Virus record (IMG/VR): IMGVR_UViG_3300030673_000004 | Coordinates: 186,001-250,000 of that record | Direction: 5' to 3' (one strand) | DNA length: 64,000 bases | Part shown: positions 40,714-59,660 of the stretch, in pieces | Position numbering within the stretch: the stretch's first letter is position 1 | Layout of the letters: every line of letters starts with the position of its first letter | Notes under the pieces: model-generated | What the model saw: the letters and a program-made list of their open reading frames with translations, nothing else | The model's database searches: none | What the model was told of the DNA's origin: nothing | Translations under genes and position numbers: made by a program

Positions 40714-43641
40714 ATGACTGACGCTAATTCATCTAGAGTTCGCCAAACATGGCAACGTGGGGAGCAGGCCGAGTTCCGTTTCTCTTTTGTTAACTCTTCC
40801 GGTGATGCTTTAGTTCCTTTGGATGCTAATAAATATCCGAATTATGCTTTTGTATCCCCATCGGGTCTTCAGATACAGACAGGGACAGCTCAAGCTTATG
40901 GCACTCCTGGGCAATATCGTGTTTTATGGACAATTCCTCAAGATAGTGAGTTATCTAATGATGAGATGTCCTGGCAGTTACAAGTAAACTTTGTTACGGC
41001 GCGCCGTTCTCAATTAACACATACCTTTGATTTCTTTGTTGTAGACAAGCAGGTAACAGCTACAGGTCGTAAAGATGTTGTAAACTTAGCTATTCAAGGA
41101 TCACCTCATCGTTTGTTTTGGCGTGGTGATTTTGATCCGGCGGAGATTACATTGGAGTGTTATGCCTCTCCCTACGCAGATAACTCTGATCTAGCCCCAA
41201 TTCCACATGCTGCTGCTCTAAATAAATCAGCTCTGACTAAAGTGATAGATGGTGATAGTATAGTTTACTATTATGAGATCCCCTCATCTGCGTTTACTTT
41301 ATGGGATCCTTTGAACAATCTGTATACTGGTCTGTGGTCTGTTCGTGAGACATCTGTATCTGAACTCCAAGTGGAGTATGATCAGTTTCGTGTCATCAAG
41401 AAGCAGATGGTTCAGTACATACAGTCTATTCGTTTCATGGTGGATAGATTCCAGCATAGGTTAGGTACCCCTCAGCATATTAGTGATGGAGATCTCTGCG
41501 AGGCTCTTACGGAGGGCTTGGGCCTGTTTAACGGTTGGTTCCCTGTATCTAACTACAACTGGACTGACTTTCCTATGCAGTGCTCTACATACTGGATTAT
41601 GCTTTCTACTTGGTGGATGCTGAATTCTCAACATATGCTCCAATCACAGCTCGCATTTTCTTTCTGTGTCACTGAGGATACTTATGTGTCTACAAATCGG
41701 GGTCTTGTGCAAGCTAAGTATTTGCGGCCAGGTGCCCTGGAGCATGATGTTCTAAAACTAGTAGCATCTATTGCTTTTCACCCAGATAGAGAAGCTGTTC
41801 TTACTGGTATTATAGCTAATTCTTCTGACATAAAAGACCAGAAATTAGGGTTATCTGAATTAGTTGCTTCTACAGCACCGGAAGTAGCAAGTAATTCAAT
41901 TTTGAGCATGTTTTCCAACTATGAGTTATCTCAGTTTGCCACTCATGATGAGTGGCGTCGTATCTTAATTGATTGTTCAGATGCTTTGTTTACATTTATT
42001 AATGAAACTCTTCTTGCAAATACCATAATCAGCACAAATGCTAAGTTTGACACAAAATTTAAGCTGCTTACACCTTATGGTAGAGATGTTCCTACTTGTG
42101 TTTGGGACCTTGGTGCAAAGCCTGTCTATAGATTAGAAACAGCGCACGGGTACTCTTTGAAAGCAACAGGAAATCACCCGGTATTAGTTTTAGATAAAGA
42201 ACTTAATGTACAAAACAAGAACTTAGCCGATATCTCTGTGGGTGATGTTGTCGCTATATCTAAGCGTCATGACAGTGCTGACGAGGATTGGGATATTGAT
42301 TTATCGTTTTTGGTGGATGCTGTTAATAGATACACAATTAAAGGTGCTAAAAATTACGAACTTCCCAGAAAAATGACTCCTGCCTTAGCTCGGGTACTCG
42401 GCTACATTACGAGTGAGGGCTATATAAATACTGAGGGGATTATATCTTTCTGTAATATAAATCAAATTTTATTAGATGACTACGTTAAAAACTTCACGGA
42501 ATGCTTTGGTGTTGCTCCGAAGTATAAAGGATTTCAGATAAGTAGTGCTGGAAATAAAGTACACTACTACGAAGAATCAAATCGTAAAATAGCCATGTTT
42601 TTGATTGGGTGCGGAGAGCAATTTAAGCAGGCACCTGACAAAGAAATTCCGTGGTCTATCATGGCAGCACCTCGTAGGTTAGCTCGTGAATTTATTCAAG
42701 CCTTTTTTGAGGGAGATGGGTCTTATACATCATATGATACGTCTAAGCAAAAAGGTAAAACTTTTATGAGCTTTGCATCCTCTAGTACAAAGATGCTAGA
42801 TCAATTTCAAAGCCTGCTGCTTAGATTTGGGATTATTACATCTAAGCATAGATATGCGTCAGCACAAGTTCCGCAAATACATGTACCAAGTTCTGCTATT
42901 GATATCTATGCAGATACCATAGGTTTTTGGTATAAGGGTAGAGATCATAAGCCGCGTGTTCGTTACTATGAGCAAGTAGAAGCATACCCTGAGTTTGTTG
43001 GTACTTATATTAAGTCTCTTTTTTCCGGAGCTAATAAGGGTTGGCATACAGATTCAGAAACAGGTAAAAAGTTTAGAGTGTATTCTGGTTTGACTTTGAA
43101 CGCAACTCAAGCTATTTTTGATAGCCGGTGTCCTACACAGAAAAATCTATTATTCTATTTAGAACAGCGTACAGAGTTGTTAGCTAAGTTAAAGCCTGAC
43201 GTTCTAAAGAAACTTAAGTATTTAGCTGATCTTGACTTTCAGTGGGAATCTGTACACAGTATAGATACACTGGAAACAGAAGAATGCGTTATAGACCCTA
43301 CTCTTCCAGATCGTGATACGGACTTAGCACACCACTTCTATGCTAATGGATTTGTTACCCATAACTCTGGCCAAGCCGTCACGCTAGATTATGATCAGAC
43401 AGGTGCAATTGACTCTGCTATTCAGCGTTTGAGCGAGTGGTTGAATGCACATATTACTCCACAAAAGATTATGATTAGCCGTCAGCGTTCTGGTGTGGGT
43501 AGTTTGGGCATTCGTACTCAGCGTGCTTTTGGTGCATACAACCGTGTTCTCCGGTATGACTCGGCTCGTGGTATTGATTCCAACGTTGGGTTTGAAGGTG
43601 TTCTTAATGCAGCCGCGACTTACGGTATCTTCCTGCCTTAA
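40714..43641 (+). CDS. intein-containing probable virion (neck/adaptor-like) protein; ~408 aa after splicing
   Basis: beta-sandwich-like N-terminus plus helical IRFMVDR...ISDGDL..AL..GL..FN region; exteins rejoin as AFSF/SGQAVTLDYD. Confidence 0.65.
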   Translation: MTDANSSRVRQTWQRGEQAEFRFSFVNSSGDALVPLDANKYPNYAFVSPSGLQIQTGTAQAYGTPGQYRVLWTIPQDSELSNDEMSWQLQVNFVTARRSQLTHTFDFFVVDKQVTATGRKDVVNLAIQGSPHRLFWRGDFDPAEITLECYASPYADNSDLAPIPHAAALNKSALTKVIDGDSIVYYYEIPSSAFTLWDPLNNLYTGLWSVRETSVSELQVEYDQFRVIKKQMVQYIQSIRFMVDRFQHRLGTPQHISDGDLCEALTEGLGLFNGWFPVSNYNWTDFPMQCSTYWIMLSTWWMLNSQHMLQSQLAFSFCVTEDTYVSTNRGLVQAKYLRPGALEHDVLKLVASIAFHPDREAVLTGIIANSSDIKDQKLGLSELVASTAPEVASNSILSMFSNYELSQFATHDEWRRILIDCSDALFTFINETLLANTIISTNAKFDTKFKLLTPYGRDVPTCVWDLGAKPVYRLETAHGYSLKATGNHPVLVLDKELNVQNKNLADISVGDVVAISKRHDSADEDWDIDLSFLVDAVNRYTIKGAKNYELPRKMTPALARVLGYITSEGYINTEGIISFCNINQILLDDYVKNFTECFGVAPKYKGFQISSAGNKVHYYEESNRKIAMFLIGCGEQFKQAPDKEIPWSIMAAPRRLAREFIQAFFEGDGSYTSYDTSKQKGKTFMSFASSSTKMLDQFQSLLLRFGIITSKHRYASAQVPQIHVPSSAIDIYADTIGFWYKGRDHKPRVRYYEQVEAYPEFVGTYIKSLFSGANKGWHTDSETGKKFRVYSGLTLNATQAIFDSRCPTQKNLLFYLEQRTELLAKLKPDVLKKLKYLADLDFQWESVHSIDTLETEECVIDPTLPDRDTDLAHHFYANGFVTHNSGQAVTLDYDQTGAIDSAIQRLSEWLNAHITPQKIMISRQRSGVGSLGIRTQRAFGAYNRVLRYDSARGIDSNVGFEGVLNAAATYGIFLP
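41665..43365 (+). mobile_element. intein with LAGLIDADG homing endonuclease (C318-N884, 567 aa)
   Basis: block A CVTEDTYV, block B LKATGNHPV, LARVLGYITSEG and FIQAFFEGDGS, block G FYANGFVTHN/S. Confidence 0.93.
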
Positions 43642-48840: not shown

Positions 48841-49308
48841 ATGCATATGCCAAAATATCTGACCATCTATATAGACATGGATGATACTCTGTTTGACTTT
48901 ACAGGGGCCTACCGTCAAGCTCTAGAGGATAATCCGGCACAACCCTTTCCTCAGTCACAGATAGGATTCTTTCTGGGACTTCGACCGATCACTGGAGCGC
49001 TACAGGCTTATGACACTCTTAGAGAGCAAGGCCACCGTGTCTTGTTCTTAACTGCTCCATCTGTGCGTAATCCCATGTGCTACACAGAAAAGCGGATGAG
49101 CATAGAGCGTCACTTCGGCTTTGATGCTTGTACAGACCTAATAATTGCTCACGACAAAAGCTTGTTACGCGGGGACATTCTTGTGGATGATAAATGCGAC
49201 TCTAATAAGCAGACCGAGTTCCATGGGTATCTCCTAAACTTCGGTTCGTTGCAGTACCCAGACTGGACTAGTGTACTGCGGGGGATCTCGGGGATCGCTA
49301 ACCTGTAG
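48841..49308 (+). CDS. HAD-family 5'(3')-deoxyribonucleotidase (NT5C-like)
   Basis: IYIDMDDTL, FLTAPS, EKR, DKSLLRGDILVDD. Confidence 0.9.
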   Translation: MHMPKYLTIYIDMDDTLFDFTGAYRQALEDNPAQPFPQSQIGFFLGLRPITGALQAYDTLREQGHRVLFLTAPSVRNPMCYTEKRMSIERHFGFDACTDLIIAHDKSLLRGDILVDDKCDSNKQTEFHGYLLNFGSLQYPDWTSVLRGISGIANL

Positions 49309-49366: not shown

Positions 49367-49468
49367 TTGACATTTTTGGCTTTGCTTGTATATTTCGTAA
49401 TACGAAGCAGTTGGTTAGCGAATTACCTCCTGTTCGCTCTTTGACAGTGTGTGTTTGTACCTAGTGCG
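49367..49468 (+). promoter_or_regulatory. CRISPR promoter and leader
   Basis: TTGACA(49367-49372)-N16-TATATT(49389-49394), next to the most conserved repeats. Confidence 0.7.
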
Positions 49469-50013
49469 GTAGCACTTTGTACCCATGTGTGAATTGAAAC
49501 AAGTATGACCATGCATGCCGACAGCTTGAGGCGGGTAGCACTTTGTACCCATGTGTGAATTGAAACCGAGTATACCCTCGATCCCACCCAAGCTCCTTCG
49601 TAGCACTTTGTACCCATGTGTGAATTGAAACGAGGTATTGTCTTAATAAGGCATTAGCTAATGGGTAGCACTTTGTACCCATGTGTGAATTGAAACTCGC
49701 TGACAGGCTTAACGACGTTGGATCGCCCGTAGCATTTTGTACCCATGTGTGAATTGAAACTTCTCGACAGCCGCTCCGACAATTCCTGACAAGTAGCACT
49801 TTGCATCCCTGTGTGACTTGAAACAACGCTAGGTCGTGCGAGAGGCTTTGGCCAGAGTAGCATTTTGTACCCATGTGTGAATTGAAACATGGCGGCAGAT
49901 TAGTTGGCGGAGAAATTTGGGTAGTACTTTGTACCCCTGTGTGGATTGAAACTCTTACAGTTCGCATATCTGGATTGACATCCAGGAGCTTGTACCCATG
50001 TGTGAATTGAAAC
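49469..50013 (+). CRISPR. CRISPR array, 9 repeats and 8 spacers (32-34 bp)
   Basis: repeat GTAGCACTTTGTACCCATGTGTGAATTGAAAC at 49469, 49535, 49600, 49665 (identical), 49729, 49793, 49857, 49921 (variants) and 49985 (3-nt deletion). Confidence 0.97.
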
Positions 50014-50064
50014 CTTGTACCATTGGGCAGTCGCCGTGATTTTGTATTTGACTAAAATTTAAGC

Positions 50065-50092
50065 TTGACAAACAAATTTTTTGAACTATATT
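50065..50092 (+). promoter_or_regulatory. sigma70-like promoter for the ncRNA
   Basis: TTGACA(50065-50070)-N16-TATATT(50087-50092). Confidence 0.7.
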
Positions 50093-50098
50093 TTGTTC

Positions 50099-50280
50099 TA
50101 CAAGTCGAGCACAGCGACTCTAAATCAATGCCGGGGGGTATTTCAGGTCCTCGTTAACAGTCCGAAGAAGAACTCACTGGAGGGCTTCGCTGCTAGGGTA
50201 ACCTAGCGAAACGGCTGCCAAATTCACACACAAGTCCCTGCCTAGGTGCGAAATAAAACCTAGGCAGGGATCTTTTTGTT
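50099..50280 (+). ncRNA. putative tracrRNA/scaffold RNA
   Basis: non-coding stretch between promoter and terminator; AATTCACACA(50221-50230) complements repeat TGTGTGAATT; TTTCA(50141-50145) complements repeat TGAAA; internal GCTAGG-GTAA-CCTAGC hairpin. Confidence 0.7.
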
Positions 50281-50282
50281 TT
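50235..50282 (+). terminator. intrinsic terminator of the ncRNA
   Basis: perfect 13-bp stem TCCCTGCCTAGGT/ACCTAGGCAGGGA followed by TCTTTTTGTTTT. Confidence 0.85.
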
Positions 50283-50308
50283 ACCCTATTTGAACTTGGA
50301 GATGAACG

Positions 50309-52225
50309 TTGGCTATTCGCAAAAAGACTCCAATCTTGGGCGCTGCTCCGGGTGATGTGCGAACGACTAAGTCCTATAAGTTTGAGCTGTATCCAACAAA
50401 AGATCAGAGAGACAAGTTGTTTACTTTTCTTTGGGCAACTCGGTGCATGTACAATGATGCGCTTGAATGGTTGTTTACGGATAAGATGCTGTTTGATATG
50501 GGTGACATTGACGTGTGGCTAGAGCATCGCGTACTGGCTCTTCTTAGTGATACTGAGAAGAAACAAGCTATTCTTACTTTGGAGTTGGAAGAGCTGCAAA
50601 AACGGCCAGGCACACAATGTAAACAAAATAAGATTCTGGATAGCCTAGAGAAGATGCGTGGCAAACATGATACGTTTGTTTTAGGTTTAGCAAAAATGCG
50701 CACAGAATATGAGAAAAAGATCTGGCCACGTCTCTCTAGAGAGGACATGACTGTTCTTGCTGGTGCTATTCGGCGCTTGAATAAGTCACACCCTGCTTAT
50801 GACGCAAGTTTGGGAATTCCAGCGACTACATTTAATTCGACAGTAGCCAAACGCCTTAGCCAAGCACAGAAAAGCATTTACACGTCAGATCGTCTTTCTA
50901 AGAAAGACGGCAACTTTCTTGTTTCTCGTAGACGTGAATCTACTAAAACACACATTGTTACGTACACAGATCCGGAATCTGTTCAAAAGGTAGAGAACTT
51001 CCCGAATTTCAGATCTCGTACCTCTAGCTTTATTTTAGAGGCGCAGAAACCTTCCGCATTTATCAATGGTAAACTAGGTAATCTTAAGATTACCCCTGCA
51101 CTTACTGTTCAATTTTGTGCTTATGTTGACATTCTCACGGGATCAGCCAAAGAAATTACACAGGCTATCTCAGCTAGGCGTGTTATTGGGATGTCCGTAG
51201 GTCAACAGATTACTGTAGCAGTTGATGGTACTGGGCGTTGGTGGACTAGTATTACTATTGATACCAACCATAGTCCTGTGTTGTATCCTGTTGACATTAA
51301 TAAAACTATGGCACTTGATTTTCGTCCAGCCGCTATTACAACTAGTACCGGATTCCGGATGATGCGGAGTCTTGATGCTCTTCGTTCTGTAACTAGCTAT
51401 CCTAATTGTGCCGCTCTGGCTAAGAAGTATGAAAAGAATCAAAACGCTATTGTCATGAAGCAGCGTGAGGTTTCTCGTAAGTATGAGCTGCATAAGCGAG
51501 CTAGCCAGACGTTCAAGACTACACACGTTTGTCCTATTTGTGGCGCAGTTGCCTCAGACGAAGCTGTTGCTGATCTTAACACTTTTAAGTGTTCTTGTGG
51601 GTTCTCCGTGAGGATGAAATCTAAGAATCATCGTAAAGCCAAGTTTGAGCTATCTATGTTGCATGCTCGTAGTGCTGGTATACTGACAAACTTAAGACGG
51701 CACATTGTGCATTCCTGGGTAGCATCAGAAGCAACTACATTTGTCATTCAAGATATTCCTTTGAACGAAGGTTTCAAGGCAAAGGCAAAGACAAAGAAAG
51801 ATGGGGAGAAGGACAAAGATAAGAAGCCTCGCAGATGGCGTGGCTGCGCTATCCGACGGCGCAATATCAACAGGTTCACACATCAGCTAGCTGCTGGAAC
51901 ATTGCGTAGCATGCTTGTTGCGTCTGCTGCTACTATGCAGAAGAACGTGATCGTGGTCTCTTCTGACTATGATCCTCTGCACACCTGTAGCTGCGGTCAT
52001 GTTATTTCTACTGGTGCTACAATGTGTGATGATGTTGTTGCTAATGCACCTACCCGTCTACTGTATATTCCGTTTGATCACCCAAAACTTGTTCTTGGAG
52101 CTAAGTCAGGAACGGATGCTTTACGCAGATTTGGTGAAGCATTAACTCAGAAAGAAGCCCGTAAGCAAGCTAAGTTACTGCGAAAGGCTGCGTTGACTTC
52201 TGGCCAGGGGATTGCTGTTGATTAA
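50309..52225 (+). CDS. TnpB/Cas12f-like type V effector, RuvC-II Glu replaced by Gln
   Basis: KSYKFELYPTKDQ...TRCMYNDAL (IS605 OrfB-like N-terminus); RuvC-I MALD337; SKNHRKAK..L..LH helix; RuvC-II FVIQ481D; candidate RuvC-III D574/D575; GGAGA RBS. Confidence 0.85.
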   Translation: MAIRKKTPILGAAPGDVRTTKSYKFELYPTKDQRDKLFTFLWATRCMYNDALEWLFTDKMLFDMGDIDVWLEHRVLALLSDTEKKQAILTLELEELQKRPGTQCKQNKILDSLEKMRGKHDTFVLGLAKMRTEYEKKIWPRLSREDMTVLAGAIRRLNKSHPAYDASLGIPATTFNSTVAKRLSQAQKSIYTSDRLSKKDGNFLVSRRRESTKTHIVTYTDPESVQKVENFPNFRSRTSSFILEAQKPSAFINGKLGNLKITPALTVQFCAYVDILTGSAKEITQAISARRVIGMSVGQQITVAVDGTGRWWTSITIDTNHSPVLYPVDINKTMALDFRPAAITTSTGFRMMRSLDALRSVTSYPNCAALAKKYEKNQNAIVMKQREVSRKYELHKRASQTFKTTHVCPICGAVASDEAVADLNTFKCSCGFSVRMKSKNHRKAKFELSMLHARSAGILTNLRRHIVHSWVASEATTFVIQDIPLNEGFKAKAKTKKDGEKDKDKKPRRWRGCAIRRRNINRFTHQLAAGTLRSMLVASAATMQKNVIVVSSDYDPLHTCSCGHVISTGATMCDDVVANAPTRLLYIPFDHPKLVLGAKSGTDALRRFGEALTQKEARKQAKLLRKAALTSGQGIAVD

Positions 52226-52226
52226 A

Positions 52227-54399
52227 GTGAAAAAGCTTCGCAAGTATCAGGAAGAGACACTTACGTGGGCTTTCCATGTACTGGCTAATCCGCAGCGTCC
52301 ACATTTGTTGATTGGGCAGCCACCGGGTGCAGGAAAGTCTATGCAGGCCCATTTGATTAGTCGGTTTGCTCTGGAATGTCCTAGTCTAGGGATCAAGAAA
52401 ATTCTGGTACTGACACCATTGATAGCAATCCGTTTTGGGTTTGCACGTGATCGGGACTACGGCGTAACGTATACGTCTGACTCGTTTAGCTGGCTTCAGA
52501 ACGGTGGCGTTCGGCCACTAGACTTTCAGACAACAGATGGTGCTCTTCTAGCTATGCTGCAGACAGATCGTGTGGGTGCCTATATTGCATGTCACGCATC
52601 TTTGGCTAACGCAAAAGCTGAAGATGCTCATGCTTTTGAGCAGTTGGACGACTGCTCAGATTTACTTATTGTAGTTGATGAAGCACATCACCTTAATGCT
52701 GAATAACCTGACGAGTGTCGTACAGTGTGCTGTAGATAAAGGTGCTCGAATGCTGCTACTGACAGCAACGCCGTTTGTATCTACCGGTTCGTGGGAGTTC
52801 ATCTTAAAGAATAAGACAAAGTCTCGTATACGTCCGCTTAGTCAGCATATTGAAGAAGGCTTTGCACCTCGCCTGGAAAATGAGATCATCTATAGCGATA
52901 TCTGGCCTATGGAGAACGGACTCCCTTCGCCTGAGTTTGTGGCACGTAAAACGATTGAGACGTTTTTAGCAAATGATCGAGTCAAGAGTCTTGTTGTTGT
53001 ACCTGCTACACCGTCATGCCGGGCTTGCGGTACAACGGAGGAATACGTCGATAAGATCATAGACGAGTGCTACAAACTTGTGCCACGTACAGATATTTCT
53101 TTGTTGAATACTCTGGGCGATTCTAAGACAGATATTATCACCAAAGAGTGCCGTGGTGATACCTATCACGATATTCAATTCACGCCAACCACAGGCAAAT
53201 ACCGTGAGGGTGTGGATGATCCCAGGCTAGCCTGTATTCAATACTTTGTTCGTCCGAAGTCCTCTATTCTTAGCGTTCAGATTCCGGGTAGGACTCTTCG
53301 CGAGAAACCTGAAGGATATCTGCCTGTGCAGTTTAGATTTAAGTCTAAACAGATATTCCATACTTCTTCGGCTGCTGGCGCCCTGATAGAATTTTCCTGT
53401 GATGTTCTAAAGTACATTCTCCGAACAGAGAATCCTTTAGCTGCTGCTACTCTGCCACCAATCAAAGCTATGATCGGCGAACTGCGTATGCGCAGGCGGC
53501 AAGCAGACAATTCAGGTGATATTAAATTAGCACAAAGTTATGCTGAATTTGCGGATGCCTTGGAAGATGACGCTGAAACAACTATGTGTGAGGCTCTTGC
53601 CGACTTAGATGCTCAAGTTACGCTGGCCTATGAGACTCAGCAAGGAGTAACTCTTCCTAAGCTAATTCAGCAGTATGGAATGGACTCAAACGTTGTTAAA
53701 TTGGCTATGTATCAACAGCTTAAGAATCATCCTGATAAGTTATTGGAGCACATGGAGTCTATCATTGAACGGCGTACACGAAATCACAAAGGCGGAAAGC
53801 ATAAGCCGGGAAGTACGCCGTCATTTGAGATTGCCGACTTTTACCTTCATATGCTTGCAGAGCAGTATGCTGATGAAGAAATAGATCAGTTTGTGACAAC
53901 TATTGATAGTCGCGTTTTGACCGAGTGGTCTGATCGCTGGGAGAAACTTAGAGACAGGACAGATCTGGAAAAAGCTGACGGTCTAGTTCAGGCTTTCAGC
54001 ACGGGTAGCCTTCGTCGTGACGATCATATCAACTACCCATCGTTTGAAGAGTTTCGGCTGCGTAATCTGCTCAGTACGGTGCTGCCCGCAGTTAAACGTC
54101 CCAGTTTAGAGGCTCGTGCGCTGTTAGATGCTGCTGGGTTGTCTAGTCGCATTTTTGCTGATAACTGGAATGATCCTCTTGTTTGTAACAATGGTACCTT
54201 GCTAACTCTTCAGCGTTTTGTACCTTTGGCATCTTGGGTGAAGGCGCATGGAAGGCTACCCCAGATTTCTTCTGATCTAGAAGAGAGGTCCGCCTATAAA
54301 TTCTACAGAATCTATAAGGACAAAATGACTGTAGTTGCTTCTCAGCACACTGCTAGTATCATACAGGAACTACATATAGGAGAAGTCTTGGATGCCTAA
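52227..54399 (+). CDS. SF2 (DExH, Res-like) helicase split by a frameshift at ~52704
   Basis: LRKYQ, GQPPGAGKS, VLTP and IVVDEAHH in ORF 52212-52706; LTATP, EGVDDP, QIPGRTLR and HA-like HGRLP in ORF 52675-54399. Confidence 0.85.
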
Positions 54400-55039
54400 G
54401 ACTAAGACAACGTCACCTGAGTTTGTTTATGCTTCTCATGGCAAGCAGGAATACCGCAAGTATGTTCAGGGCCAATTCGATATTCATTCTCTTGGTGATT
54501 TCCATGGTAAGTGGCTTGAGCCCATTGGGGCAGGTGCTTTAACATTTGATTCATTACTAGCAACCGGGCGTATAGATGAAGCTAGCCTGATTGGGTTAGA
54601 CAAGAACCCTAGGGATATTGCAGGATCACGTCAGAACATCGAGCAGTGCCGCACTAAATTCCCAAAAGCTCAGTTCTTCTGTCAAGATTGGCGTGAGTTC
54701 TGTCTACAGTATCGCGATCCAATTAGGTACATCGTTTACGATTTGTATACATCTACTTTTGGGCCGGAGCTTCTAAGCAATTTGCAGGCTATTTTTAGTT
54801 TAGTGCAGCAGAGCTTGAAGTACCATGGTCAAGTTCTTCTCGCTGTAACGGCAGATTTGCAGGCAACTATGCGACATAAGAAAGACGTACAAGACTTTGA
54901 GCATCTGTTGAAACGTGTATTTGAATCACCTACTATTCGGCATAGCCGAATATCCTGTAAAGACATGTTTCTATATACCAGCAATCGCGATCAGATGGGT
55001 GTTTTGATCATTGAATTCTTTAACAATACTGTTCCTTAG
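54392..55039 (+). CDS. putative class I SAM-dependent methyltransferase-fold protein
   Basis: WLEPIGAG (motif I), LIGLDKN, FFCQDW, YIVYDLY; overlaps the helicase stop. Confidence 0.6.
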   Translation: MPKTKTTSPEFVYASHGKQEYRKYVQGQFDIHSLGDFHGKWLEPIGAGALTFDSLLATGRIDEASLIGLDKNPRDIAGSRQNIEQCRTKFPKAQFFCQDWREFCLQYRDPIRYIVYDLYTSTFGPELLSNLQAIFSLVQQSLKYHGQVLLAVTADLQATMRHKKDVQDFEHLLKRVFESPTIRHSRISCKDMFLYTSNRDQMGVLIIEFFNNTVP

Positions 55040-55693: not shown

Positions 55694-55993
55694 ATGTACC
55701 GTACTATTTTTGGCAGTGTAATCTTTGCGTTTGCTCTGGTACACGCCGCAGATAATAAGCCATGGGATTCACAAAATATAGATCCGGTTGCTGTCCAAGC
55801 ATCTGCGAGTTCTTCTTGCTCTGACAGCGCTAAACGAGCATTCAGTCAAGCAATTCAATCTTCCCTGACGAAGAATAACAAGTTCAGTGTTCATCTATTG
55901 ATTCAAAATGGTAAGAAGTACGGTGTGCTTCGTGAAGTTCTGGACTATGTCCAATACTGGAAGCGACAAGATATTGGGATGTTGGAGCAATAA
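55694..55993 (+). CDS. exported hypothetical protein
   Basis: MYRTIFGSVIFAFALVHA signal peptide; AAGGA RBS. Confidence 0.6.
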   Translation: MYRTIFGSVIFAFALVHAADNKPWDSQNIDPVAVQASASSSCSDSAKRAFSQAIQSSLTKNNKFSVHLLIQNGKKYGVLREVLDYVQYWKRQDIGMLEQ

Positions 55994-56532
55994 TGTTTCA
56001 AGTCAAAAAGACAATACAGGCATTGTCTTATTTTTGTAGAGAATCTAATAGTTCTGTCAAGATATCTACGGCTTTAGCTTGGTTGTTTCTTGCCGATGTG
56101 TCACATTTGCGAGAATACGGAAGAACCATATCGGAAGATACTTATATCCGAACAGCTACTGGATTTGAGCCGGTGAGTACTCGTGACCTACTTACTAGGC
56201 ACATCAAGGCATATGTAACTACGCCGGATGTGGTTTACTGTCGTCTGTGTTTGGATGTAACGCCTAATGATGTGGATATACGCAAGGGAGCTATTTGGGA
56301 TACCGATGAGATGTCTGATTCCGATACTCAAGTTCTAGCAACTACTTATTCCGCATATCATAGATTTAGTCGTAGTCAGCTTAGAGCCATTGTTAGGACA
56401 TTTCCAGAATGGCAAGCAGCGCACTTAAAATCTGTAGTATCTGCTGAATTGTTCCTAACAGGTGCTACTGACATAGCAAAAATTCATTTCTATCTAAGTC
56501 TTAGATTTCCTTCTCGACTGGAAATTGTATGA
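55993..56532 (+). CDS. Panacea/SocA-like (DUF4065) antitoxin-domain protein
   Basis: LFLADVSHLREYGRTISEDTY, DEMSDSD...L, FPEW. Confidence 0.7.
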   Translation: MFQVKKTIQALSYFCRESNSSVKISTALAWLFLADVSHLREYGRTISEDTYIRTATGFEPVSTRDLLTRHIKAYVTTPDVVYCRLCLDVTPNDVDIRKGAIWDTDEMSDSDTQVLATTYSAYHRFSRSQLRAIVRTFPEWQAAHLKSVVSAELFLTGATDIAKIHFYLSLRFPSRLEIV

Positions 56533-58561: not shown

Positions 58562-58694
58562 CCCTATTCGCCGCACATCTTGCGGTGATTAGAGCTGCTA
58601 TTCACCGCACATCTCGTACAGTCTAAGTTTTAAGGAATAATTATTACTTGGCTTGTATGTTGACAAAATTACATATGTGAAGTATATTTGTACT

Positions 58695-59660
58695 ATGAAA
58701 CTTGAAGACATTGGCTTTTACACTCTATCTGATGATCGTTGCGCTGCAGCGTCGGCTACATCTCGTATGATGCGGGGTGAGTTGATTTTGACCAGTGCTT
58801 ATAATTTCAAGTGTCCTTATTGTCGGGGGCAGCGTAAGGATCTCAAAAAGCATCTTACCTATGAAGAGGCTGCTCGCGTAGTTGATTTGTGGGCGGCGGA
58901 TAATTTGAAAAGTATTCGTTTCTCTGGTGGAGAACCAACTGTGTGGAAAGACCTCACAGCATTGGTCGCACATGCTAAAGAAGTTGGAATTGAGAATATT
59001 GCCATCTCTACAAATGGATCATCTTCTTACGAAACTTACGTTGAATTGATCGCTGCTGGAGTTAATGACTTTAGTATCTCCCTAGATGCTTGCTGTGCTG
59101 CTTATGGTGACAAGATGGCCGGTGGCATTGAAGGTGCTTGGGAACATGTCATTGAAAACATTAAAGCTTTAGCCAAGCTCACTTACGTTACTGTTGGAGT
59201 TGTAGTAACAGAAGAAACAGTAACTGAACTTAAGTCCACTGTTGAATTTGCTGACTCTCTAGGGGTGGCAGATATTCGAATCATTTCTGCAGCACAATAT
59301 AACGAGTTGTTGGAGGTATCAAAAACAGTACCTGTTGAAATTCGTGATCGTCATAAAATTCTCAAATATCGTATTGAAAATGCGATTAACGGAATCAATG
59401 TCCGGGGTATTGGTGAACACGATTCACATAAATGCTGGATTGCCTTGGATGACATGGTTGTCATGGGTAATCATCATTTCCCTTGTGTGATTCACATGCG
59501 AGAACTGGGTGATCCTATTGGGGAAGTAGGACCACATATGCGCAAAGAGCGTGAGGAGTGGGTTGCTCGGCATGATACGCACAAAGATCCTATCTGCCAA
59601 AAGAATTGCTTGGACTGTATTGTGATGTACAATAACAAGTATGAGCAGACGCACAGATAA
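58695..59660 (+). CDS. radical SAM protein with YxxxCxxC in place of CxxxCxxC
   Basis: AYNFKCPYC, FSGGEPT, ISTNG, SISLD; C-terminal Cys cluster; leaderless after promoter 58660-58688. Confidence 0.85.
   Translation: MKLEDIGFYTLSDDRCAAASATSRMMRGELILTSAYNFKCPYCRGQRKDLKKHLTYEEAARVVDLWAADNLKSIRFSGGEPTVWKDLTALVAHAKEVGIENIAISTNGSSSYETYVELIAAGVNDFSISLDACCAAYGDKMAGGIEGAWEHVIENIKALAKLTYVTVGVVVTEETVTELKSTVEFADSLGVADIRIISAAQYNELLEVSKTVPVEIRDRHKILKYRIENAINGINVRGIGEHDSHKCWIALDDMVVMGNHHFPCVIHMRELGDPIGEVGPHMRKEREEWVARHDTHKDPICQKNCLDCIVMYNNKYEQTHR

Follow-up and report, generated by a model that had tools for sequence, protein, structure and literature searches.

A predicted nuclease-dead TnpB/Cas12f-like effector in a CRISPR module of a complete phage genome

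The complete virus record IMGVR_UViG_3300030673_000004 is a phage genome from peat. It is 375,537 bp long, has direct terminal repeats and a GC content of 42.8%, and carries the gene for a portal protein among other phage genes. We analysed a stretch of 64,000 nucleotides (nt) of this record (positions 186,001 to 250,000), referred to below as the window and numbered from its own first letter, which carries the gene for a TnpB/Cas12f-like effector of 638 amino acids (aa) that is predicted to be nuclease-dead (50309..52225, with a TTG start 7 bases past GGAG). The gene belongs to a module whose features all lie on the + strand and in which a promoter, a CRISPR array of nine repeats, a near-identical second promoter, an RNA of ~185 nt that resembles a trans-activating CRISPR RNA (tracrRNA), the effector, a superfamily 2 (SF2) helicase and a protein with an S-adenosylmethionine (SAM) methyltransferase fold follow one another. 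Throughout the three protein-coding genes, each start codon overlaps or almost touches the preceding stop codon. The order of array, promoter, homologous RNA and effector recurs in the loci that we label L001, L007, L003/L004 and L005, which together with the window makes five divergent phage loci in all. The flanks of this block vary from locus to locus, and the helicase is absent from the module in one of the five (L005).

The frame of the effector is open across 638 codons, and its residues 20-53 match the Pfam family HTH_OrfB_IS605. Similarity to curated NCBIfam models stays below threshold (guided_TnpB reaches 26 bits and C2c8 15 bits, where the cut-offs are 100 and 350), and PADLOC reports a partial match to Cas12f (27.9 bits, E 3e-7). 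When the family was turned into a profile, it aligned with solved TnpB at an E value of 1e-15, with Cas12m2 at 0.005 and with GoCas12m at 0.13. Likewise, the nearest structural neighbours of the effector model (Foldseek, VIA) were the TnpB proteins of ISDra2 and ISFba1 (Z 13-13.7), with Cas12m (11.5-12) and Cas12f (11.7) behind them, and then Cas12p and Cas12k. Because of the Pfam, NCBIfam and PADLOC similarities and the structural matches, the effector is predicted to adopt a TnpB/Cas12f-like RNA-guided-nuclease fold. The fold that the original prediction had assumed is thus borne out by the structural matches and the profile alignment, and the protein has the form expected of a type V system, namely one large effector whose RuvC-like fold derives from TnpB. 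The open reading frame (ORF) is a real gene, as follows from this fold and from a ratio of nonsynonymous to synonymous substitution rates (dN/dS, or omega) of 0.06 against the closest homologue.

Catalytic positions were assigned by aligning the family profile to solved TnpB structures, and the codons were checked by script. The original prediction had read the RuvC triad as D337, Q481 and D574-575, and the codons and strings that it quoted are all present in the DNA. D337 (GAT, 51317..51319, in TMALDFRP) aligns with D191 of ISDra2 TnpB (GVDVG), which confirms it as the RuvC-I residue. Q481 (CAA, 51749..51751, in TTFVIQDIPL) occupies the Glu position of canonical TnpB, again as proposed, since it aligns with the Glu of ITIEDLN in ISFba1 TnpB (8iaz) and with that of AVEDLN in 9yyg; in the ISDra2 alignment, the position of a gap offsets this motif by two residues. 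The canonical TnpB pattern also holds ahead of Q481 (SKNHRKAKFELSMLHAR...NLRRHIVHSW...TTFVIQDI). The third residue had been misplaced. D574 and D575 (GAT GAT, 52028-52033) lie in CSCGHVISTGATMCDDVVANAP, and when the alignment is anchored on N-A (N579-A580 in the window, N363-A364 in ISDra2), it is V577 (52037..52039) that faces the catalytic D361, the second Asp of D-R-D-E-N-A-A, while D575 pairs with D359, the non-catalytic Asp of the D-R-D motif. On this alignment the triad reads D337/Q481/V577, with one of the three canonical carboxylates left and without the catalytic D-E-D of type V effectors. That RuvC-III corresponds to V577 and not to D574/575 strengthens the conclusion that the nuclease is dead. 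From the earlier wording "probably nuclease-dead or attenuated" we would therefore retain the first term, as a prediction that is favoured by the Gln at RuvC-II, the Val at RuvC-III and the comparison with homologues, and thus on stronger grounds than those first given. The neighbouring D482 gives no evidence for a shifted active site, because canonical TnpBs ordinarily have an Asp right after their catalytic Glu (IEDL in 8iaz, VEDL in 9yyg, FEDL in 9j09 and LEDL in P0010).

Homologues of the effector are scarce. Word-indexed protein searches, with the single sequence and then with a profile, retrieved the effector itself and one partial homologue only, and an exhaustive HMMER search of 1.8 billion representatives yielded nine hits, seven of them usable. 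No homologues were found in IMG/VR or in GTDB genomes, and the JGI metagenome contigs contained only the phage's own contig. Across the array-linked loci, effector identity is 22-31%. Compared with the D/Q/V of the window, the triad reads D/Q/A in the closest homologue (L006, 75% identical), D/Q/S in L007, H/Q/T in L001 and -/Q/V in the partial L008; L003 has H/T/Q, and L005 has D/K and a deletion of the TNB zinc ribbon and RuvC-III. The only D/E/D sequence is L002 (P0007), which is ~21-24% identical and has no array. At RuvC-III the family accordingly shows V/A/T/S/V/Q, with Asp in L002 alone. Since array-linked relatives read H/Q/T, H/T/Q or D/K/deleted, none of the three carboxylates is needed by the family.

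The Gln at RuvC-II is found in all five sequences of the closest clade, at 28-75% identity, and is encoded by CAA in the window and by CAG in L006. Logan contigs from three peat metagenome runs (word depth 18, 28 and 92; 11,884 nt each) are identical to the window over 49859-54500; the three runs may include the source sample, and contigs of this kind hide rare variants. The suggestion that Q481 is recent or a sequencing error can be discarded in view of the agreement of these three assemblies, the retention of Gln in five sequences and the different codon in L006. Nor do close homologues carry Glu, which is kept, together with Asp, only in the distant L002. The comparison of the window with L006 gives a dN/dS of ~0.06 for the whole gene, with local values of 0.07 near RuvC-II and 0.09 near TNB/RuvC-III; dS is saturated. 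The relaxed selection that had been proposed applies to catalysis, but does not extend to the protein as a whole, which is under strong purifying selection. Because Gln is kept across the clade, is encoded by CAG in L006 and is reproduced in the assemblies, and because dN/dS is ~0.06, the substitutions appear to reflect an ancient, family-wide inactivation of a maintained protein and not decay.

The neighbourhood of L002 contains no array, helicase or methyltransferase beside the effector. A maximum-likelihood tree of nine rows with long branches groups L002 with the canonical TnpB P0010 and places the array-linked members on the other side (support 94/92). The simplest history compatible with these sequences would be that an active phage-borne TnpB was domesticated into a CRISPR effector and then lost catalysis. 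In L005, the effector (240-2224) has 464 aa and stops before TNB/RuvC-III; it shares 4 nt with the methyltransferase-like gene, there being no helicase, and is preceded by a repeat and by a tracr-like RNA that has a terminator. In L007, the effector gene is broken up over several frames and the array is degenerate, through either decay or assembly error, whereas the helicase and methyltransferase-like genes are intact.

Outside the catalytic positions, the effector shows several features of its own. An extra CxxC...CxC zinc ribbon (C408, C411, C428 and C430; 51530..51598) interrupts the long helix that connects RuvC-I to RuvC-II. The window shares this insertion with L006, L001, L007 and L005, whereas L002 and L003 lack it. 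A Pfam TNB match at residues 400-433 was rejected as a true TNB, as it corresponds to this inserted ribbon. What remains of the TNB ribbon proper is found at 51986..52027 (C560, C562 ... C573). Its fourth Cys is gone as a consequence of a three-residue deletion (VCG) relative to the 75%-identical homologue, which reads CDVCGD, and the degenerate state of the C-terminal zinc finger had thus been correctly recognised. Following RuvC-II, where Cas12 "lid" elements sit, the protein has a Lys/Asp-rich low-complexity loop (KAKAKTKKDGEKDKDKKPRRWRG; window 51764-51853, residues 486-515), whose length is greatest in the window and L006 and for which the model has a predicted local distance difference test (pLDDT) score of <50. 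The motif vLGAxSGxxALRxFG after RuvC-III (window 52091-52138, residues ~595-610) is kept in all family members, including the active-looking L002.

Upstream of the effector lies the CRISPR array (49469..50013), which consists of nine 32-nt repeats (GTAGCACTTTGTACCCATGTGTGAATTGAAAC) and unique spacers of 29-34 nt. Regular repeats (period 64-66 nt) with unique spacers, 296 nt 5' of the effector and on its strand, are what is expected of a type V locus. The final repeat is degenerate in its 5' half. Homologous arrays are located 5' of the effector in L001, L007, L003/L004 and L005, with repeats that end in TTGAAAC, TTGTAAC or TTGAAGG. A sigma-70-like promoter (TTGACA-16-TATATT, 11/12 consensus matches) is predicted ahead of the array at 49367..49394, and a near-identical one (TTGACA-16-TATATT) ahead of the tracrRNA-like gene at 50065..50092, which suggests that the two could be co-regulated as separate transcripts. 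The stretch after the terminal repeat (50014..50047) contains a 12-nt motif, T(A/T)GTACCATTG(G/A), at 50015-50026, and the same motif follows the degenerate or terminal repeat in L001 (873-884) and L007 (347-358). Copies of this motif resemble one another across loci more than they resemble their own repeats. It may be a guide, conserved and directed at a common target, or else an element that marks the end of the array. A role as a self-targeting guide was rejected, as the single match in the phage's own genome covers 11 nt, which is at chance level. Likewise, none of the spacers matches the phage's own genome beyond chance, and the spacer targets would be external, with both host genes and rival elements as candidates.

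Between the second promoter and the effector, a non-coding tracrRNA-like RNA of ~185 nt is predicted (50099..50283, fold z-score -3.7). It carries an anti-repeat, AATTCACACA (50221-50230), that is complementary over 10 bp to TGTGTGAATT in the repeat, and an intrinsic terminator hairpin (50236-50269) with a T-run that reaches 50282. We estimate that a 10-mer match between such an RNA stretch and the repeat would be expected by chance ~0.004 times. The scaffold is homologous in L001, L007 and L005, which share the motifs AGTCGAGCAC, GCCGGGG, CCTCGTTAACAG and ACGGCTGC, and double changes occur in 7 of the 26 pairs of the consensus structure. The 3' segment, in turn, varies with the repeat of each locus, i.e., the anti-repeat covaries. 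Repeat and anti-repeat form a perfect duplex of 24 bp in L001 (-46 kcal/mol), and the duplex in L007 reaches -34 kcal/mol. An Rfam scan of the locus gave no meaningful family match. Taken together, the conserved RNA is predicted to be a tracrRNA-like partner of the effector, and its locus-specific anti-repeat, which spans 24 bp in L001 and 10 in the window, corresponds to that of the tracrRNA of Cas12f.

Downstream, the stop codon of the effector is overlapped by a gene for a SF2 (ResIII/DEAD) helicase (52212..54399) that is frameshifted into two ORFs (52212-52706 and 52675-54399) directly past motif II (DEAHHL; window 52675-52706). The site shows neither a homopolymer nor an obvious slippery site and could reflect a pseudogene, a split gene or recoding. 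The helicase is intact in L001, L007 and L003 (705-731 aa). No HD or other recognisable nuclease domain was found in it, it is not Cas3 by profile, and its PADLOC matches are weak and mixed (DpdF, DinG and Cas3). This helicase subfamily has been seen only alongside the effector, the relatives in IMG/VR being 23-31% identical. Its stop codon is overlapped in turn by the gene for the class I SAM-methyltransferase-fold protein (54392..55039, 215 aa), which was modelled by AlphaFold2 (AF2) with a pLDDT of 83. Proteins of ~215-224 aa that are 36-45% identical and keep LEPIG, D70 and D117 are encoded in all five array-linked loci. Their fold matches are generic and indicate no substrate class. A distant pair occurs in a 223-kb IMG/VR phage (L010, 3842-7407), where a gene for a 958-aa helicase overlaps one for a 230-aa methyltransferase-like protein and no Cas12-like gene or array is found. 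Because of this pair, the association of helicase and methyltransferase may be older than its link to the CRISPR unit.

The wider surroundings of the module are as follows. An NT5C-type 5'-deoxynucleotidase (window 48841-49308) lies directly 5' of the array, and a SocA/Panacea-domain (antitoxin-like) protein (window 55993-56532) and a radical-SAM protein (window 58653-59660) lie 3' of the module. Further upstream, at window 40714-43641, a 975-aa protein with weak similarity to head-tail connectors contains an intein with a LAGLIDADG homing-endonuclease domain; this intein-bearing protein is kept in related phages (L001, 6596-end; L007, 6179-end), in a position that differs relative to the CRISPR block. 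The effector gene is single-copy, without a paralogue in the 375,537-bp genome, and there is no second CRISPR array. A profile scan of the complete genome also found no Cas1 (PF01867), and hence no adaptation module (cas1, cas2, cas4) of the usual kind. Such a module is optional in many type V subtypes. A blastn search of the locus against phage GenBank entries gave no match.

The effector is best explained as the descendant of a phage-borne TnpB in which RuvC catalysis would have been lost through Glu->Gln and Asp->Val changes that left D337 in place. We consider it probable that it now serves as the effector of a minimal type V-like CRISPR system, encoded in a complete phage, that binds DNA under RNA guidance without cleaving it. 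In this scheme, the array and the separate tracrRNA-like gene would each be transcribed from their own near-identical predicted promoters, after which CRISPR RNA (crRNA) and tracrRNA would pair via the anti-repeat and load the effector. The complex would then bind complementary DNA and form an R-loop without making a cut. Conceivably, its occupancy blocks transcription or replication of a target in the host or in a rival element, as in Cas12m, and part of the output might also come from the SF2 helicase and the SAM-methyltransferase-like protein of the same operon. Occupancy without cutting, as shown by Cas12m variants, is the best-supported mechanism.

Several observations weigh against this interpretation. 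The AF2 model of the effector is modest (pLDDT 64.7 and a predicted template modelling (pTM) score of 0.43, from an alignment of eight sequences). The acidic residues D337, D482 and D574/575 stay near the site. In the window the anti-repeat spans only 10 bp, and the duplex is energetically not superior to those of shuffled repeats, as is also the case in L003. Exact 22-24-mers of spacers S1, S2 and S6 in IMG/VR and of S4 in GTDB genomes revealed no protospacer. The helicase frameshift is reproduced in the three run assemblies, and the L007 effector (530-2357) is spread over three frames, with tblastn pieces in frames 2 and 3.

Some of these observations could be accommodated if the locus were a decaying, non-functional remnant in which the motif losses reflect pseudogene-like drift. 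The frameshifted helicase of the window, the missing fourth Cys of its zinc ribbon, the fragmented effector and degenerate array of L007 and the extreme rarity of the family would all fit such a scenario. We nevertheless regard it as very unlikely, given the intact frame of 638 codons, an omega of ~0.06 against a homologue whose synonymous divergence is saturated and the retention of the same Gln at 28-75% identity. In addition, the tracr scaffold and the anti-repeat covary, and both predicted promoters and the terminator are intact. The chance that Q481 is simply a sequencing or assembly error for Glu seems negligible. CAA and GAA are only one base apart, but the contigs of the three runs (18-92x word depth) contain no differences, and the CAG of the closest homologue and the Gln of four further homologues would have to be explained as well. 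A more serious consideration is that the effector could be attenuated and not dead, with a rearranged site (formed by D337 and either D482 or D574/D575, or by the Gln and a second metal ligand) that still cuts or nicks DNA or processes RNA. D337 is kept in the window, L006, L007 and L005, an acidic residue is found at position 482 in six of eight sequences, and rearranged, presumably active RuvC-II sites have been described for TnpB branches (PMC10691335). On the other hand, D482 is the ordinary Asp after the catalytic Glu and, on a beta strand, should face away from the site, and D575 is not conserved (Ser in L008, Asn in L003). Moreover, the D337 position is occupied by His in L001 and L003, and L005 is devoid of the entire RuvC-III region. 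Since family members lose even D337 or all of RuvC-III, a residual or rearranged nuclease is improbable in our judgment, although clearly less so than decay.

A different question is whether the dead effector acts as the targeting subunit that brings the helicase and the methyltransferase-like enzyme to sites defined by the spacers, where RNA-guided methylation or remodelling would ensue. In each of the five array-linked loci a methyltransferase-like gene comes after the effector, and at 36-45% identity it is more strongly conserved than the effector itself (22-31%). The overlapping or nearly abutting start and stop codons, and the fact that the block holds together while its flanks differ between loci, would be consistent with such a role, as would the restriction of the helicase subfamily to loci with the effector (23-31% identity for its IMG/VR relatives). 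Furthermore, the L005 effector that lacks TNB/RuvC-III is coupled directly to the methyltransferase-like gene, and the D/E/D relative L002 has neither partner. Cleavage would be dispensable if the output were the activity of another enzyme, as with Cas12k and its Tn7 proteins. In contrast, the predicted complex of effector and methyltransferase scored 0.26, short of the mark of 0.32. The distant helicase-methyltransferase pair of L010, which has no effector or array, indicates that the pair may be an independent phage module that sits beside the CRISPR unit, and all loci may stem from a single phage clade in which local gene order is preserved. The helicase is also frameshifted in this phage, and the generic methyltransferase fold indicates no substrate. 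On balance we think this role unlikely, if the least unlikely of the alternatives considered here. Its most specific form, in which a tracrRNA-dependent dead Cas12-like protein guides a SAM-dependent methyltransferase, usually with the SF2 helicase, to spacer-defined DNA of the host or of rivals, is somewhat more doubtful again, and ranks only a little above an attenuated nuclease. We therefore continue to favor an effector that binds its targets under RNA guidance and does not cleave them.

Only a few Cas12 effectors are, to our knowledge, naturally dead, namely Cas12k, Cas12m, some Cas12c and the sigma-factor-linked dCas12f. Each known dead Cas12 has revealed a new use of RNA guidance. The family described here would add an independent, phage-borne case of a naturally dead Cas12-like effector, as predicted from its sequences, and it offers a before-and-after series in which a lone, active-looking phage TnpB can be set against a branch with array, tracrRNA and lost catalysis. 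Its helicase and its methyltransferase-fold protein are unusual as conserved operon partners. If these partners were functionally coupled to the effector, the module would represent the first natural RNA-guided system of the methyltransferase type. Even without such coupling, the effector would constitute a compact natural DNA-binding Cas12-like protein of 638 aa with a defined guide pair, and it would exemplify a lytic huge phage that uses CRISPR targeting in a non-destructive manner.

How does the module relate to known systems? Cas12f/TnpB-like Cas12 genes have been noted in soil huge phages (PMC10691335; PMC11748809), and surveys list several inactivated V-U and Cas12/TnpB branches (PMC10691335). 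Our literature search, which was not exhaustive, found no published description of a module that combines an array, a tracr-like RNA, a dead effector, a helicase and a methyltransferase. Closest in sequence and fold are Cas12f (V-F) and the IS200/IS605 TnpB proteins of ISDra2 and ISFba1, with which the effector shares the N-terminal HTH_OrfB_IS605 region and the order WED-REC-RuvC-TNB; Cas12f, like the present effector as predicted, also depends on a tracrRNA. Both, however, are active D/E/D nucleases, and TnpB uses an omega RNA within a transposon. The effector fails the curated NCBIfam/Pfam cut-offs, which places it outside V-F by sequence, and it differs further in its additional zinc ribbon, inserted between the first two RuvC motifs, and in a conserved tail at the C terminus. 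The context is not that of an IS200/IS605 element either, as no transposase was detected among the neighbours scanned, the gene is single-copy, an array takes the place of the omega RNA and the triad is lost.

Functionally, the nearest parallel may be Cas12m (V-M; for example, MmCas12m and GoCas12m), whose variants with altered triads (H-D-D, N-D-D) bind DNA without cutting and still interfere by occupancy, and which uses a crRNA-only guide without tracrRNA (PMC11013384). Cas12m is likewise a compact (~600 aa), TnpB-derived effector that is encoded beside a CRISPR array on mobile elements (PMC11013384; PMC11656645), it has an altered RuvC triad and it is a structural neighbour of the present effector (Z 11.5-12). 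In contrast, the present family keeps a tracrRNA-like gene in five loci, so that it departs from the crRNA-only rule, and its weak sequence tie to Cas12m (E 0.005 for Cas12m2, 0.13 for GoCas12m) does not support membership in V-U1/V-M. It also differs in its D/Q/V substitutions, its residence in a lytic-type huge phage and its operon with a helicase and a methyltransferase-like gene. In Cas12m-Cas3 hybrid loci, a non-cutting Cas12 lies beside a SF2 helicase that may supply the output (PMC10910872, Altae-Tran et al. 2023), whereas the helicase of the present module carries neither an HD domain nor any other recognisable nuclease domain and does not classify as Cas3 in profile searches.

Cas12k (V-K), the effector of CRISPR-associated transposons (CAST), and CasMu-V have inactivated RuvC domains, a tracrRNA and short arrays, and they select targets for other enzymes (PMC11656645; PMC10910872). 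The present effector resembles them in its predicted natural inactivation, its tracrRNA-like RNA and its short array, but no Tn7-like tnsB, tnsC or tniQ and no Mu genes were found in Pfam/PHROG scans of the neighbours at 40.7-59.7 kb or in the homologous loci, and the partners are a SF2 helicase and a methyltransferase-fold protein instead. TldR and the sigma-factor-linked dCas12f are nuclease-dead, RNA-guided DNA binders of the TnpB lineage that are kept by selection (PMC10705468; PMC10691335), and in this respect they are similar to the present family. They use a single fused guide without a multi-spacer array and are linked to fliC/oppF or RpoE, whereas the module described here has a nine-repeat array with unique spacers and no fliC/oppF/RpoE partner among the neighbours scanned. 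Identity with Cas12r of Thermus phages was considered and rejected, as Cas12r is active, has no tracrRNA and has its array downstream. Judged by their defining features, Cas12m, Cas12k, CasMu-V, Cas12f, TldR, the sigma-linked dCas12f and Cas12r thus all appear to be distinct from this phage-borne family, in which a TnpB-derived effector that would have lost RuvC catalysis is accompanied by an array, a tracrRNA-like partner and conserved operon neighbours.

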